DNA of 64,000 nucleotides from contig NC_043023.1 of the NCBI RefSeq assembly GCF_006345805.1, positions 8,432,001-8,496,000 of the forward strand. The letters run 5' to 3'. The notes under the pieces are model-generated. The model had not been told where the DNA came from. It saw only the letters and a list, made by a program, of their open reading frames with translations, and did not search any database. Each line of letters begins with the position of its first letter. The first letter of the stretch is position 1. Of the stretch, positions 1,809-50,897 are shown in pieces. The translations under genes were made by a program, and so were the position numbers. The DNA comes from Octopus sinensis (lineage: Eukaryota).

Positions 1809-1992
1809 CCTCTCTGCCAATATGGGCTATCAGTGGATGGCAGTACATTGAAGTTTCAAAGATCCTGCAGCACATACAACAACTGCCTTGAAGCTTTCAG
1901 AAACAATTCCCTTACATGCAAAAATTGGTCCAATGGCACTGCTTGTGTTGCTTGTTGCAGAGACAACTTATGCAATAAGAATGATTTCCCTG
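1809..1992 (+). CDS. aGPCR exon: C-terminal half of Ly6/uPAR three-finger-like domain
   Basis: ttacag|...cctg|gtaagt. Reads PLCQYG...CVACCRDNLCNKNDFP with the CCxxxLCN signature; phase 0 to 1. Confidence 0.82.
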
Positions 1993-2036
1993 GTAAGTGT
2001 TGTTAATTCTTTGGTTTAATCGCATCTGATTTATTT

Positions 2037-2250
2037 ATAGAGTGGTTGTATACTGCCAACTTAACGTGACAGTCCTGTAAGGGAATAACACCACCGATGT
2101 TTAGCCCTAGGAAGCATCGACGTTTCCTGTCGGCCTTAAATGTGTCAAGGCTGACAGGAAGCGTCGATGCTTCCTAGGGCTAAACAGCGGTGGTGTAAAT
2201 CCCTTACAGGACTGTCACGTTAATTTGACAGTATACAACAACCACTCTAT
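2037..2250. repeat. Near-perfect palindrome, about 100-bp arms and 9-nt loop (foldback/MITE-like)
   Basis: atagagtggttgtatactg...gtcggcctt aaatgtgtc aaggctgac...cagtatacaacaaccactctat. Confidence 0.9.
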
Positions 2251-4442
2251 CGCTCCACCACCGTACATATCTCTATGAGATATTTAGAACTTTAATATTT
2301 CTGATTTATTTATAGATGGATGTTCAATATGAAGATTGGATAATAGTTGATATATGACAAAATGAGTTACTGTGTACATTAACACACAAACACAAACGCA
2401 CACACACACATATACTCACATATATACTATATAATATATAATATATATGCGCATGTGTATGAGTGTTGTGTGTATATCACACATATATATGTATATATAT
2501 ATATATATATATATATATATATACATAGATATACACACACATATATACAAATCTCTCTCTCTCTCTCTCTCTCTCTATATATATATATATATATATATAC
2601 TCACACAAATACGCACACACACACATTTATATATCAAGTATGCATGCATTGCACCTTCATTGGGTTTACGACCGTTATCCATGTTGTCATGGGTTAAACG
2701 GATATACTATACAACAATTGTTTTACAGTTGAATGCCCTTCCTATCACTAATGCTTACGCGTTTTCTGGTAACGAATTTCTTATTTCGCATTTCTTCCAA
2801 TGCATGGAACGATTGAATGATTTGTTGACAGGAAAAGCGCTTGCGATTTTCAGAGTACGTTTTTTAACAAAGAGTACGTTTTTTAACACACACATATATG
2901 GACATATACAGGGTTTCTTTCAGTTTATATATCTTAAATTTACAAATCAGGGTTTGATCGGCCGGAGTAGCAAACACTTGCCTAAGGTGCCACGCAGTAC
3001 GACTGAATTCTTAAGTATGTGTCGAACCATTTAACCATCTGGCTATCCCTGCACCTGCATACGCATCTTTACAGATGTGTGTGCGTGTGTGTATGTATAT
3101 GTATATATATATTTGAATATATATATGTTTATATATATATATATATATATATATATATATATATATATATATATATATGTACATATATATGTGTGTGTAT
3201 GTATGTATGTATGTATATATGTATGTATGTATGTATGTCTATATATATATATGTACATATATATGTGTGTGTATGTATGTATGTATGTATGTATGTATGT
3301 ATGTATGTATGTATGTGTATATATATATATATATATATATAAGATAATAGAGATGGAAAGATGGAAAAGTTAATAGTTAATTAATTACAAAAATATACAT
3401 AGACTCTGACAGCTGTTTCGATTCGATCTTTAGAAATTAACTAGAATAATTAAAAACACTATAAAGTTCAATCTCGACAAAGGTAGCAAAAAGATATACA
3501 ATTACATGATGTGTTTAGTGTACAGAGCATGGCAGCTAACTGAGTATTGTTTTATAGAAAGAACATGGTATAAACCTTATAAGGGGGGAGGTATATTTGT
3601 ATTTATATTTATATTTATAACTTCTATAAATAGATATAAATTTATATTCATTTTGTTAACTCCGAAACAGCTGTCAGAGACTATGTCTATTTCTGTAATT
3701 AATAAATAATTATTAATTTGTCTATCTCTGTTTTCTTATTATTCTTAAACAATCGTATAAAACAGATTATCATATTACCTTATGGTTGAATATTAAATAT
3801 AAAACTCAGCAGTTATCTTAGGTCATACACAAATGAATTCATCGGATGTTTTATTACTTAATGAGATATCTAACCTTTAATTGAATCTCTCTCTCCTCCT
3901 CCTCCTCCTCCTCCTCCTCCTCTCTCTCTCTCCCTCTCTCTCTCTCTGTATATATATATATATATATATATATATATATATATATATATATAAAGATACA
4001 CACACACACACACACATATATATATATATATATATATATAAACTTACTTGGAGAAGAAGAAAATAACGCGCGGCGTTCAATCATATAATAACAATTTAAT
4101 AAATAAAACATATGCATATATACATACATATATGTACATACCTACATCTATATGTATATATACATGCATATATGAGTACAGGTCACCACAAATAAACGTA
4201 GAACACAACGAGAAACGAAAACATAAAACCAAACAAGAAAACGGACTTTTTTAACAACGAAAAAACAGAGTACAAGACAAACAATACAAGGAATATTCCC
4301 CTTCATCAGCTGCCCCTGCTTCGACTCAATGCGTGTTTCATATATACATATAGATGTAGGTATGTACATATATGTATGTATGCATATGTTTTATTTATTA
4401 TATATATATATATATATATATATATATATATATATATATATA

Positions 4443-4570
4443 TGACGGGCTCCTTTCACTTTGTGTCTATCAAATCCACTACCAAGGCTAAGACACTTGC
4501 TCAATGTGCCACACAGTGGGACTGAATCCTTTGCGATTGGGAAGCAAATCTACTACACAGTAACGCCTAT
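4443..4570 (-). mobile_element. SINE family A, internally deleted 5' half
   Basis: Reverse complement of the gtgtggta..cccactgtgtggcacattgagcaagtgtc..gcccgtc head/core. Confidence 0.6.
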
Positions 4571-5300
4571 ATATATATATATATATATATATATATATAT
4601 ATATATACTCAAAATAAGCAACAAGAATGACTCCGGTAATTTGGCACGATCGTTTCGTACTACATCATTTTATTAAATGTTGTAATTATTACAACAATTC
4701 TAAAATGCTGAGTACTCATCAGCCAATTAAGTACCATATTCATTTGAATCTAAATTTTTGCTGAATTTCTATATATACATACACACATATCCGTGAGTAA
4801 CCCCTGCATATGCATATTACCTACACTCCAATCTCCTATGCCTAAAAGTGAAATCTAGCCAGTGACTTTCTCAACCATACAAGACCTTAAGCAGAACATA
4901 TTAAAAGTAACTGGGTATAACGCATCGTACAAAGGCAGTTACAAAAGTAAACACACACTGAAAATATGCATATGCATATGAATCATATTTAAATAATATT
5001 GAAATAATCCTATATTTTCATCCATCTCTCTCGTGTAAGAATCCATAAGCCAAACAATTATGCAATTGCATATTTGTCCGTAGACTGGCTATATTAATGA
5101 AAGTATACGGTATTATAGACCGACTACAACTGATATTAGCAATTGGTTTCATACAGGGTATTAAATAACCGATGATTATATAACAACACACTGTTAAAAT
5201 TATATTTCTATGTTCATAGTATATGCCACTCGGTGCATCCGTGGCACGTGTCTCATTTATAATCGCAATGTCTAAGTTTTTCTTTTATGTTCTTGAATAG

Positions 5301-5407
5301 GTTGGACGCATTCCTTTGAACTTCATCTGATTTATACCGTGGACGCATATTCGACTTTTAAGAAATTAACTGAAAATGAAAAGACCACAGAAAATGTATC
5401 TAGAGCT
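5301..5407 (+). CDS. aGPCR exon: start of SEA-like domain
   Basis: gaatag|...gct|gtgagt. GWTHSFELHLIYTVDAYSTFKKLTENEKTTENVSRA; phase 1 to 0. Confidence 0.8.
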
Positions 5408-48883: not shown

Positions 48884-48947
48884 GTTGCACTGATGAACAT
48901 GGAATGCATATCCTGCATTAATTGCGAAATCACAGGTGATATGTAAC
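48884..48947 (+). ncRNA. Predicted type I hammerhead ribozyme
   Basis: gttgca-CTGATGA-(aatgca/tgcatt hairpin)-GAAA-tcac ag gtga-TA-tgtaac; stems I and III pair, AUA site. Confidence 0.65.
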
Positions 48948-49098
48948 TAAATTCCTTTTTTAAATGATTTGCTTTGAAGTGTTGCATTCGGTAAAATTTT
49001 GTTTATTTTAGTAGTTTTGACCGCATTGGTCCCTCTTAGCGTATGGTATCTACGAATAGTAGTACCCTCAATATAATATATATATATATATATATATA

Positions 49099-49458
49099 GG
49101 CGCAGGAGTGGCTGTGTGGTAAGTAGCTTGCATACCAACCACATGGTTCCGGGTTCAATCCCACTCCGTGGCACCTTAGGCAAGTGTCTTCTACTATAGC
49201 CTCGAGCCGACCAAAGCCTTGTGAGTGGATTTGGTAGACGGAAATATATGTGTGTGTGTGCGTGTATGTAGGTGTGTCTGTGTTTATCCCCCTAGCATTG
49301 CTTGACAACCGATGCTGGTGTGTCACTTAGCGGTTCGGCAAAAGGACCTATAGAATAAGTACTGGGCTTACAAAAGAATAAGTCTCGGGGTCGAGTTGCT
49401 CGATTAAAGGCGGTGCTCCAGCATGGCCGCAGTCAAATGACTAAAACAAGTAAAAGGA
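49099..49458 (+). mobile_element. SINE family A
   Basis: Full head and tail, small internal deletions. Confidence 0.88.
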
Positions 49459-49915
49459 AAAGGAAGGATATCCACATTGTCGTGAATTCGATCCTTTATC
49501 TCGGATGATATCCAGCCATCGGGTAAAATAGAATCAATGTACGAAAAGAGAGATATTTATAAACAAACAATGAAATAGGAATCTTCGAAATGGAATGGGG
49601 AGGTTAATGCCGGTGACGAATCAAACTGCATGATTTGAAAGGCAAATAAATATATTTTATGATCGGTTAACGTCTTGTAGTAAACAGTACAGCTTCCAAA
49701 GGGACTGGCACCAAGGCGCCCACCAGAACACGTCTGCTCTTAAGATAACTGATCAGAAATACAATTCGTAGCTTTTAGTGGTATATGTGAAATATATCGT
49801 ACATATCCATATATATACACACACACATATGCCAAATAGATATTCATTTAGCAATGTAGAAAATTAAACCACAAACAGAATGCATAAATATACATAAAGC
49901 TATAGACCCACGTAC

Positions 49916-50490
49916 GGAGGCGCAATGGCTCAGTGGTTAGGATCTGAAGATCGCGGTTTCGATTCCCAGACCGGGTGTTGTGAGTGTTAATTGAACGAAA
50001 ACACCTAAAAGCTCCATGAGGACCCGGCAGGGGATGGTGGTGACCCCTATTGTACTCTTTCGCCACAACTTTCTCTCACTCTTATTGAACGAAAACACCT
50101 AAAAGCTCCATGAGGACCCGGCAGGGGATGGTGGTGACCCCTGTTGTACTCTTTCGCCACAACTTTCTCTCACTCTTATTGAACGAAAACACCTAAAAGC
50201 TCCATGAGGACCCGGCAGGGGATGGTGGTGACCCCTTTTGTACTCTTTCGCCACAACTTTCTCTCATTCTTATTGAACGAAAACACCTAAAAGCTCCATG
50301 AGGACCCGGCAGGGGATGGTGGTGACCCCTGTTGTACTCTTTCGCCCCAACTTTCTCTCGCTCTTTCTTCCTGTTTCTTGAGTAACGCTGCGATGGACTG
50401 GCGTCCCGCCCAGAAGGTGGAACACATACGCCACAGAAACTGGAAAACCGGGCCCATGAGCCTGGCTAGGCTTAAAAGGGCGACGTACGT
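49916..50490 (+). mobile_element. SINE family C (tail type 3) with an internal 4 x 94-bp tandem array
   Basis: Units start at 49991, 50085, 50179 and 50273; 15-bp TSD tatagacccacgtac at 49901-49915 and 50491-50505. Confidence 0.88.
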
Positions 50491-50840
50491 TATAGACCCA
50501 CGTACAATATATACACAACCGTGCAAACCTTTGACTGAAATGGAACTAAACAGTTCATCATTTTATATAAAGTTGTCCAGTTGCTCTGGAAAATATTCTT
50601 GAATCGCATTTGTTAATATCTTACAATATATCCCCGATAATCAATCACTTACAGCTAGTTTGTGTAACAATGGTTTTGTATATAAATTGCGTTGCTTATA
50701 CTTCCTTCTTATGCAGTAATATTTTTCATGTGTGGAAAACCAGTTGATGACAATTGTTGCTATTTTTAAATTTTAAGTGCCAAGAATTATTTGTGTTTAA
50801 AAATCAATATTTTATATAATTGTTCTCATTATGTTTCTAG

Positions 50841-50897
50841 GTCCAAGCACCAGTAATGAAAAAGGAGATAAAACAGCAGAAACGGACTTATAAATGA
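50841..50897 (+). CDS. Probable terminal aGPCR exon
   Basis: tttctag| acceptor. Phase 0 reads VQAPVMKKEIKQQKRTYK* (stop ends 50897); phase 1 reads xPSTSNEKGDKTAETDL* (stop ends 50893). Confidence 0.65.
   Translation, partial: VQAPVMKKEIKQQKRTYK

Follow-up and report, generated by a model that had tools for sequence, protein, structure and literature searches.

A putative three-finger (Ly6/uPAR-like) domain in the ectodomain of an octopus adhesion G protein-coupled receptor

Our analysis of a 64,000-nucleotide stretch of the Octopus sinensis genome (hereafter the window; chromosome CM016885.1:8,432,001-8,496,000 in GCA_006345805.1) centres on a gene whose annotated product, the 970-aa protein P0001, goes by the NCBI name "adhesion G-protein coupled receptor G6-like". 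With a probability of roughly 85% we read this protein as an adhesion G protein-coupled receptor (GPCR) of the ADGRG type that acts via a tethered agonist and in whose ectodomain leucine-rich repeats (LRR), an LRRCT cap, one LU (Ly6/uPAR) domain, a ~105-aa SEA-like domain, HormR (also HRM) and GAIN with an intact GPS follow each other ahead of the seven transmembrane helices (7TM). Judged by its sequence, P0001 is an adhesion GPCR (class B2) with a secretin-type 7TM and a GAIN/GPS, and the module between LRRCT and the SEA-like domain is, going by sequence and predicted structure alike, a diverged LU domain with the 12-Cys Lynx/LYPD1 pattern. The gene and its family expansion are already known and annotated; an LU domain within an adhesion GPCR is, as far as we could find, unreported. 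Literature searches for adhesion GPCRs with uPAR/Ly6 and for octopus with Ly6 brought up no description of such a domain (which is not proof of absence), and the main text of a 2025 survey of adhesion GPCR ectodomains (PMC12716839) has no uPAR, Ly6 or three-finger domains.

The window is AT-rich, holds many microsatellites and transposon remains, and has coding sequence in short islands only, clearly the make-up of an animal genome. Stop-free islands on the + strand, provisionally spliced, gave P0001 as best protein match, followed by dozens of paralogues from O. sinensis, O. vulgaris, O. bimaculoides and Argonauta hians, and tblastn of P0001 against the window returned essentially identical exon matches, the few mismatches being alignments that overrun exon ends. 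From its position 27264 on, the genomic locus of P0001 (L001) is base-for-base identical to the window, and a search of L001 for an exon chain whose translation equals P0001 yielded 22 exons, all introns GT-AG, that translate into exactly this protein. The window contains 17 of the 22 (exons 6-22), beginning at 1809 and closing with the TAA stop at 50891-50893 (Table 1). Between an AG acceptor (1807-1808) and a GTAAGT donor (GT at 1993), exon 1809-1992 reads PLCQYGLSVDGSTLKFQRSCSTYNNCLEAFRNNSLTCKNWSNGTACVACCRDNLCNKNDFP plus one base, which joins 5301-5407 in frame (G|GT, Gly) and leads into WTHSFELH... A preliminary description, drawn up from the letters of the window, had proposed this exon and its in-frame splicing to SEA-like, HRM, GAIN/GPS and 7TM exons, and both are found exactly so in the annotated protein and again in paralogues. 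The stretch it assigned to the gene (1809-50897) starts rightly on an exon boundary and ends 4 nt past the stop codon. It had also placed the LU domain in exon 1809-1992; the exon is real, yet it encodes the C-terminal two thirds of the domain with 8 of 12 Cys, while the first third and the other four Cys come from a 92-nt exon starting KTLFQKNLQCQTCSGMTCDYLEMRSCPGLL (LQCQTCSGMTC...SC) ~2.7 kb upstream of the window (window -2748..-2657). The further exons it expected upstream turned up on L001 as well: 5' of the first LU exon there is one LRRCT exon, preceded by two 72-nt LRR exons. Sought inside the window, the first LU exon and the LRRCT are absent, both being located outside it.

What identifies the module is, to begin with, its Cys framework, i.e. 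12 Cys over ~85 aa with the LxCxxC start and the CCxxxxCN end of LU domains (LQCQTC...CCRDNLCN). With the LU segment as query, phmmer found 47 domain hits among 81 homologues, most of them full-length modules and some weak non-LU stretches, and across an alignment (A1) of 20 paralogue and orthologue LU segments drawn from these hits all 12 Cys and the final Asn of the CN end are invariant, so the Cys pattern is not due to chance. Run against PDB sequences (E<=10), the A1 profile matched nine, every one a three-finger protein, including LYPD1/Lynx2, the activin receptor type-1 ectodomain, LYPD6, a muscarinic-toxin-like protein, SLURP-1, Lynx1 and LYPD6B; LYPD1 was best (E=5e-4) and aligned over the whole domain with 12/12 Cys in register. 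Consistent with this, an AlphaFold2 model made from A1 is mostly beta (predicted local distance difference test, pLDDT, 76.6; predicted template modelling score 0.68), and in a Foldseek search of PDB with this model three-finger proteins account for all 50 matches listed. The top match is 6zss (Lynx2/LYPD1; template modelling scores 0.69/0.74, root mean square deviation 2.5 A over 85 columns, identity ~21%), with Lynx1, uPAR, PSCA, snake three-finger toxins, GPIHBP1 and TGF-beta-family receptor ectodomains next. The three-finger claim of the preliminary description is thus borne out by profile and model, the predicted structure of the module being a three-finger fold as had been anticipated. 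Searched against 1.84 billion representative proteins, the A1 profile gave 50 hits at E<=0.001, and the non-cephalopod ones include a sea-cucumber protein (Pfam CD59/Toxin_TOLIP) and fish proteins with four to seven Pfam UPAR_LY6 domains (E=2e-14 to 6e-7). In Pfam, the curated LU models gave weak hits with 3-5 of the 20 isolated paralogue segments (E=0.017-0.035), and the families hit weakly by a few paralogues are Toxin_TOLIP, Activin_recp, UPAR_LY6_2 and CD59, all of them with the three-finger fold. Within the LRR-LU head the LU domain is the most conserved part, and three N-glycosylation sequons near its third loop are conserved (NNS, NWS, NGT). An extension of the LRRCT as source of the Cys was considered and rejected, the LRRCT being a separate upstream exon (CGC...C...C) and the module having a predicted three-finger fold of its own.

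Could the module instead belong with the three-finger ectodomains of TGF-beta/activin receptors, or represent a branch of the fold not described before, and not Ly6/uPAR proper? The activin receptor type-1 ectodomain is, after all, the second-best PDB profile match (E=0.005), Activin_recp has the best single-sequence E-value in Pfam (7.7e-4, with 4/20 members), and no LU model of Pfam goes over its threshold. LYPD1/Lynx2, however, is best in both sequence and structure, with 12 Cys aligned and the LxCxxC start and CCxxxxCN end in place, Lynx1, uPAR, PSCA, SLURP and LYPD6 stand above the receptor ectodomains in the Foldseek ranking, and the A1 profile reaches UPAR_LY6- and CD59-positive proteins at the E-values given above. 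So to our minds, a place outside Ly6/uPAR proper is unlikely.

For the remainder of P0001, Pfam supports LRRs (LRR_8, E=1.7e-11; LRR_4 also found), and it gave neither CUB nor PTX. The SEA-like region (aa 204-310, three exons) is predicted by AlphaFold2 as a beta-alpha-beta-beta-alpha-beta, ferredoxin-like sandwich (E3-14, H17-43, E47-56, E59-69, H74-93, E96-103; pLDDT ~80-93, with block means of 81-93 over residues 1-100 of the model) and so matches the ferredoxin-like fold of the SEA class with its expected size of ~100-120 aa; among the 20 paralogue segments, two match Pfam SEA (E=1.4e-5). The loop joining strands 2 and 3 has the sequence SSEKSS then VVF, with no Gly, no G|SVVV and no furin motif. 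With support for SEA itself weak, "SEA-like" seems a fair name for aa 204-310; the SEA domain of the preliminary description thus stands as to fold class, size and position, while its identity as SEA is backed weakly. The HRM region (aa 310-396, two exons) is recognised by Pfam HRM in 17 of 20 paralogue segments, P0001's own segment scoring E=5.6e-5 and 23.9 bits against a cut-off of 26.2, and it can be aligned with HormR in 6v55, the structure of the ADGRG6 ectodomain, from where the alignment continues into the 6v55 GAIN. Structures of ADGRG6 and ADGRG2 align with aa 401-670 over their GAIN domains. Directly before TM1 follows the GPS (Pfam E=5.5e-15, aa 628-669), whose CSCNHL|TSFAILMDVY combines the HL|T consensus with a typical tethered-agonist sequence; both are kept in all six homologues checked (P0002, P0003, P0006, P0009, P0110 from Nucella and the run-derived P0096). 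The 7TM itself (Pfam 7tm_2 E=1.5e-36, aa 681-917) has adhesion GPCRs for all its top PDB matches, with ADGRG2 (2e-60) and ADGRG6 (2e-58), then ADGRG4 and ADGRG3, as the nearest solved receptors and latrophilins behind. Since it has no CUB or pentraxin domain, P0001 is not an ADGRG6 orthologue, and its NCBI name reflects the membrane-proximal half alone.

That the LU exons and those of the receptor form one transcript is favoured by indirect evidence. The domain order recurs in many Octopus paralogues, and the LU-to-SEA junction (NDF-x-GWT-x-SF) is found in most octopod segments listed, including that of the Argonauta hians protein. Beyond the octopods, the gastropod Nucella lapillus has a 1,322-aa protein with signal peptide (KAL8620952.1) that runs colinear with P0001 all the way between the LRRs and TM7 (BLASTP E=7e-116, 29% identity) and whose LU Cys line up throughout. 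Moreover, the 1,155-aa protein P0096 (signal peptide, LRRNT, LRR, LRRCT, LU, SEA-like, HRM, GAIN, 7TM) is encoded by an uninterrupted 3,468-nt open reading frame on a 4.2-kb contig assembled from the single run SRR21372857 and, because genes of this family have ~20 introns, the contig must derive from mRNA. These findings bear on a gene-model fusion in which the LRR-LRRCT-LU exons, 1809-1992 among them, would be part of an LRR-LU gene or transcript of their own, with a secreted product, while the adhesion GPCR would begin at the SEA-like exon. Annotated Octopus proteins that have a signal peptide, LRR and LU and end within a few residues of the LU domain (P0091, P0097, P0083, P0085) are in line with this, as are some LRR-LU tails (GKC..., GKRC...) that resemble read-through into the intron after the LU exon; in the P0001 gene such read-through would give ...NDFPGKCC-stop, i.e. 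add KCC only. Yet the junction NDF(x)GWT.SF occurs in most octopod segments, in Nucella and within the P0096 open reading frame, the exon phases match across it (1 then 1), and a receptor beginning at the SEA-like exon would have neither a signal peptide nor a start codon there. We therefore regard a fusion as quite unlikely. The preliminary description had named, as a case that would refute it, exon 1809-1992 belonging to another transcript; the LU-SEA junction, present in dozens of paralogues, in Nucella and on the P0096 contig, speaks against this.

Several results nonetheless weigh against reading P0001 as an adhesion GPCR with an LRR-LU head and deserve to be set out together. LRR-LU proteins without 7TM are annotated in the same genomes and end just after the LU domain, which may mean that LRR-LU can also exist by itself, with soluble LRR-LU products alongside the receptors. 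P0001 is a computed model, and it comes without the signal peptide and LRRNT that its relatives P0096, P0110, P0087 and P0091 have. Its first annotated exon is 23 nt long (L001 10001-10023; window -17262..-17240) and, because the protein begins MILVRKYK with neither signal peptide nor LRRNT, the 5' end of the model is probably incomplete; in the 10 kb that precede the annotated start, tblastn detected no further LRR or signal-peptide exons, 24-aa LRR exons being below tblastn sensitivity. As for the LU domain, the AlphaFold2 input was 20 fairly close sequences, two of the five models have a pLDDT of 52 or less, and the curated Pfam LU models (PF00021, PF00087, PF16975) never reached their gathering score in the 20 segments scanned. 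The isolated LU segment of P0001 itself has no LU-model hit in Pfam, and with the whole of P0001 as query Pfam called neither LU nor SEA nor HRM at E<=1, scans of isolated segments being needed for these. It is because the curated Pfam models miss the LU module that annotations list only LRR, GPS and 7tm_2. Further downstream, Foldseek with a two-domain model of SEA-like plus HRM brought up generic ferredoxin-like folds, with SEA entries absent and nothing learned about HRM, and a SEA+HRM profile (A2) matched nothing significant among PDB sequences, the sole match, GCN2 (E=0.086), being chance.

The exon structure of P0001 is that of a set of cassettes. The LU module consists of two exons with a phase 0 intron inside and phase 1 introns on either side; the SEA-like (three exons) and HRM (two exons) modules are likewise flanked by phase-1 introns, and each LRR is one 72-nt exon between phase-2 introns. 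Because flanking introns share their phase, the frame is preserved when such a cassette is copied, lost or skipped. Among the annotated computed models, from which we read this variation, there are two tandem LU domains (P0056, P0054, P0085), LU running directly into HRM (P0092, P0094) or into GAIN (P0089, P0093), repeated SEA-HRM units (P0064, P0065 and others) and a C-terminal Death domain (P0095). As judged from their sequences, the family models would thus have gained and lost whole domain cassettes, with splicing as a lead only. In this context, the O. sinensis P0091 cluster comprises 13 isoforms of 337, 361, 385 or 409 aa, in steps of 24 aa that equal one 72-nt LRR exon, a series suggestive of single LRRs being spliced as cassettes and of soluble LRR-LU products. 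The P0087 cluster and P0097 are also annotated as LRR-LU proteins with signal peptide and without 7TM.

In O. vulgaris, a single 34.6-Mb chromosome carries many of the paralogues, and in O. sinensis several map to CM016885.1, the nearest placed one (P0035) being 9 Mb away; the gene range of P0004 measures 382 kb. No second family member was found in the window or in the 10 kb upstream. Hence, the paralogue array suspected in the preliminary description holds as a family sharing a chromosome and is supported at chromosome scale only, not as a tight tandem. Similarly, the lineage-specific architecture it proposed fits the octopus expansion but is not restricted to octopus: with the colinear protein of Nucella lapillus, one gastropod gene, the LU-adhesion GPCR architecture is not confined to cephalopods. 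The spread in molluscs is taken from the profile search of 1.84 billion representatives alone. A word-indexed homologue search with A1 gave only three short fragments and was uninformative, and one with A3 (a six-sequence LU-SEA-HRM alignment) had 1,381 candidates with none at E<=0.001, the query proteins included, apparently a shortcoming of the search tool and not a biological result.

One may ask whether the P0001 gene is a decaying or non-functional paralogue with a truncated N-terminus, which stays in frame merely from youth, given that it has no signal peptide and two LRRs (as opposed to ~16 in paralogue P0003), that its introns are rich in transposon remains and that fragment annotations are frequent among family members. 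All 22 exons are open, though, with GT-AG introns throughout, nothing is lost from the 12 LU Cys, the Cys/Trp pattern of HRM, the HL|T of the GPS or the TM motifs, and in O. vulgaris the reading frame is preserved with high identity by the orthologue P0002, so that decay, too, seems improbable to us.

If P0001 works as established for adhesion GPCRs, its GAIN domain would cleave itself at HL|T during maturation, and the LRR-LRRCT-LU-SEA-HormR-GAIN fragment would remain attached non-covalently. A ligand on the distal LRR+LU head, or force through it, may then dislodge or reposition this fragment, whereupon the exposed tethered agonist (TSFAILM...) would activate the 7TM for G-protein signalling. 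The LRR solenoid and the LU domain most likely make up the ligand-binding head, at the position that CUB/PTX take in vertebrate ADGRG6. Adhesion GPCRs are defined by the binding partners of their ectodomains, and those of LU domains in other proteins, which are nicotinic receptors, proteases, Wnt co-receptors and lipase, suggest testable ligand ideas for the octopus family. A far bolder twist, which we consider a long shot, is that the LU domain docks octopus adhesion GPCRs onto pentameric nicotinic-type channels and so couples contact chemosensation or cholinergic input directly to G-protein signalling. We raise it because the LU domain is closest to the Lynx/LYPD1 modulators of nicotinic receptors and because the family is reported to be expressed in axial nerve cord, suckers and skin. 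Octopus suckers carry nicotinic-receptor-like chemotactile receptors, and these may be candidates for such docking. Were it true, splicing of LRR, LU, SEA and HRM cassettes would diversify the receptor heads. A three-finger fold as such does not imply binding to nicotinic receptors.

Recognition of the LU domain completes the domain map of the octopus family (LRR, LRRCT, LU, SEA-like, HormR, GAIN, 7TM), and its same-phase cassettes with whole-cassette variants make a clear example of exon shuffling that possibly generates receptor diversity through splicing. Because domain shuffling is common in adhesion GPCRs and function is inferred only, we consider the finding to be of moderate significance.

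Table 1. Exons of the P0001 gene in the window and copies of a SINE-like repeat
Feature	Window position	Strand	Protein residues and remarks
Exon 6, LU second exon	1809..1992	+	aa 143-204; 8/12 Cys, ends CCRDNLCN; start phase 0, end phase 1
Exon 7, SEA-like first exon	5301..5407	+	aa 204-239; predicted strand 1 and helix 1
Exon 8, SEA-like	7698..7750	+	aa 240-257
Exon 9, SEA-like	10094..10251	+	aa 257-310; three-exon module between phase-1 introns
Exon 10, HRM/HormR first half	13940..14051	+	aa 310-347; C..WP..C
Exon 11, HRM/HormR second half	14790..14935	+	aa 347-396; RKC..W..PD.SQC; module between phase-1 introns
Exon 12, GAIN, start of helical subdomain	16575..16803	+	aa 396-472
Exon 13, GAIN	17462..17633	+	aa 472-529
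Exon 14, GAIN	20611..20757	+	aa 530-578
Exon 15, GAIN	32130..32264	+	aa 579-623
Exon 16, GPS (CSCNHL|TSFAILM; TSFAILM, start of tethered agonist)	32740..32880	+	aa 624-670; Pfam GPS E=5.5e-15
Exon 17, remaining tethered-agonist linker and TM1	34359..34471	+	aa 671-708
Exon 18, TM2	37663..37786	+	aa 708-749
Exon 19, TM3	43264..43408	+	aa 750-798
Exon 20, TM4	45617..45689	+	aa 798-822
Exon 21, TM5-TM7 and proximal C-tail	46384..46778	+	aa 822-954
Exon 22, C-terminal 17 aa and TAA (50891-50893)	50841..50893	+	exact chain translation
SINE-like copies	36991-37500, 14287-14710, 15851-16284, 28029-28404, 44092-44351, 49089-49456, 63422-63852 and fragments	both	

Between and beyond these exons, the window holds a number of repeats. 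A ~420-bp repeat resembling short interspersed nuclear elements (SINE-like in Table 1) is present in at least eight copies with 75-94% identity, mostly in introns of the receptor gene, and its translated frames (…HQHRLSSNARGTNTDTQ…) clutter lists of open reading frames. Remnants of the long interspersed nuclear element (LINE) type are found in the TM2-TM3 intron (40474-42668, minus strand), with RVT_1 (E=1.5e-29) followed by zf-RVT and with antisense reading frames of 246 and 514 aa, and downstream of the gene (52804-55746, plus strand), where a second, broken LINE has its Exo_endo_phos split by a stop at ~53482 and continues in frameshifted frames that resemble reverse transcriptase. The long reading frames at 58707-60095 (minus) and 60364-60816 (plus) are unclassified. 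In the 11-kb intron within the GAIN-coding region there are two related plus-strand reading frames of 230-242 aa (24185-24910 and 26374-27063; …VVLRTYSK.LDTI..F.K…LFLP.Y…), one with a weak CCHC zinc knuckle (E=0.004), which probably are gag-like parts of two retroelement copies; they do not align in blastn at E<=1e-10, their likeness being at the protein level only. The intron between the second and third SEA-like exons has a 100% identical direct duplication of ~285-320 bp (8661-8980 and 9153-9437, offset 492 bp), with a 51-bp inverted piece beside it (9436-9486), and this duplication is either very recent or an assembly artefact. Finally, the intron between GAIN exons 16575-16803 and 17462-17633 has a GC-rich block of trinucleotide repeats (GCN/GGN, 16846-17406) whose translation would be poly-Ala/Gly/Ser in several frames of either strand; the annotated protein does not include it.

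Compared with known systems, the membrane-proximal half of P0001 is closest to ADGRG6/GPR126 and, with it, ADGRG2 and ADGRG4 (subfamily VIII), which are the best PDB matches of its 7TM, GAIN and HormR. With Gpr126 it has the order HormR, GAIN, 7TM in common, preceded in P0001 by what may be a SEA domain. P0001 also has the HL|T cleavage site and a tethered agonist of the TxFAxLM form, as in the ADGRG6 group. The ~105-aa ferredoxin-like domain that directly precedes HormR in P0001 may have its counterpart in zebrafish Gpr126, where a SEA domain of 105 aa, undetected by sequence methods, lies directly before HormR (PMC6954182). Unlike the Gpr126 group, P0001 has neither a furin site nor GSVVV in the strand 2-strand 3 loop of its SEA-like domain and, unlike ADGRG6, it has LRR, LRRCT and LU in place of CUB and pentraxin.

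As to Lynx/LYPD1-type LU proteins, the module of P0001 resembles them in size (~85 aa) and in having its 12 Cys in register with human LYPD1 (Lynx2), and it is split into two exons with phase-1 flanking introns, a layout typical of Ly6/uPAR genes. Identity to Lynx2/LYPD1 is only ~21%, and scores stay below the Pfam thresholds. Known LU proteins are small and GPI-anchored or secreted, or else stacks of LU domains (uPAR, C4.4A), whereas the LU domain of P0001 is a single internal module of a 7TM receptor, lodged between the LRRCT cap and the SEA-like domain.

Within octopus, Ritschard 2019 (PMC6408891) described a 'group 3' expansion of adhesion GPCRs as octopus-specific, for which InterProScan gave GPS and 7TM, with LRR in five of 22 members and Death in one, and which is reported to be expressed mainly in axial nerve cord, suckers and skin of O. 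bimaculoides and in gills of C. minor. LU (Ly6/uPAR), SEA-like and HRM modules are not mentioned for group 3 in that study. P0095, a member of the LU family from O. bimaculoides with LRR, LU, GPS, 7TM and Death, fits group 3, and the LU family appears to be this group, to go by shared features; unlike an octopus-specific group, however, it has a colinear protein in Nucella lapillus. Lastly, P0001 may be set beside subfamily A of the adhesion GPCRs. ADGRA2 and ADGRA3 (GPR124/GPR125) have N-terminal LRR and LRRCT followed by HormR, GAIN and 7TM, with an Ig domain after the LRRCT and no LU. Precomputed Pfam hits assign PF26588 (GAIN_ADGRA3) to some paralogues, a likeness to ADGRA3, but unlike subfamily A, P0001 is in its 7TM and GAIN closest to subfamily G.

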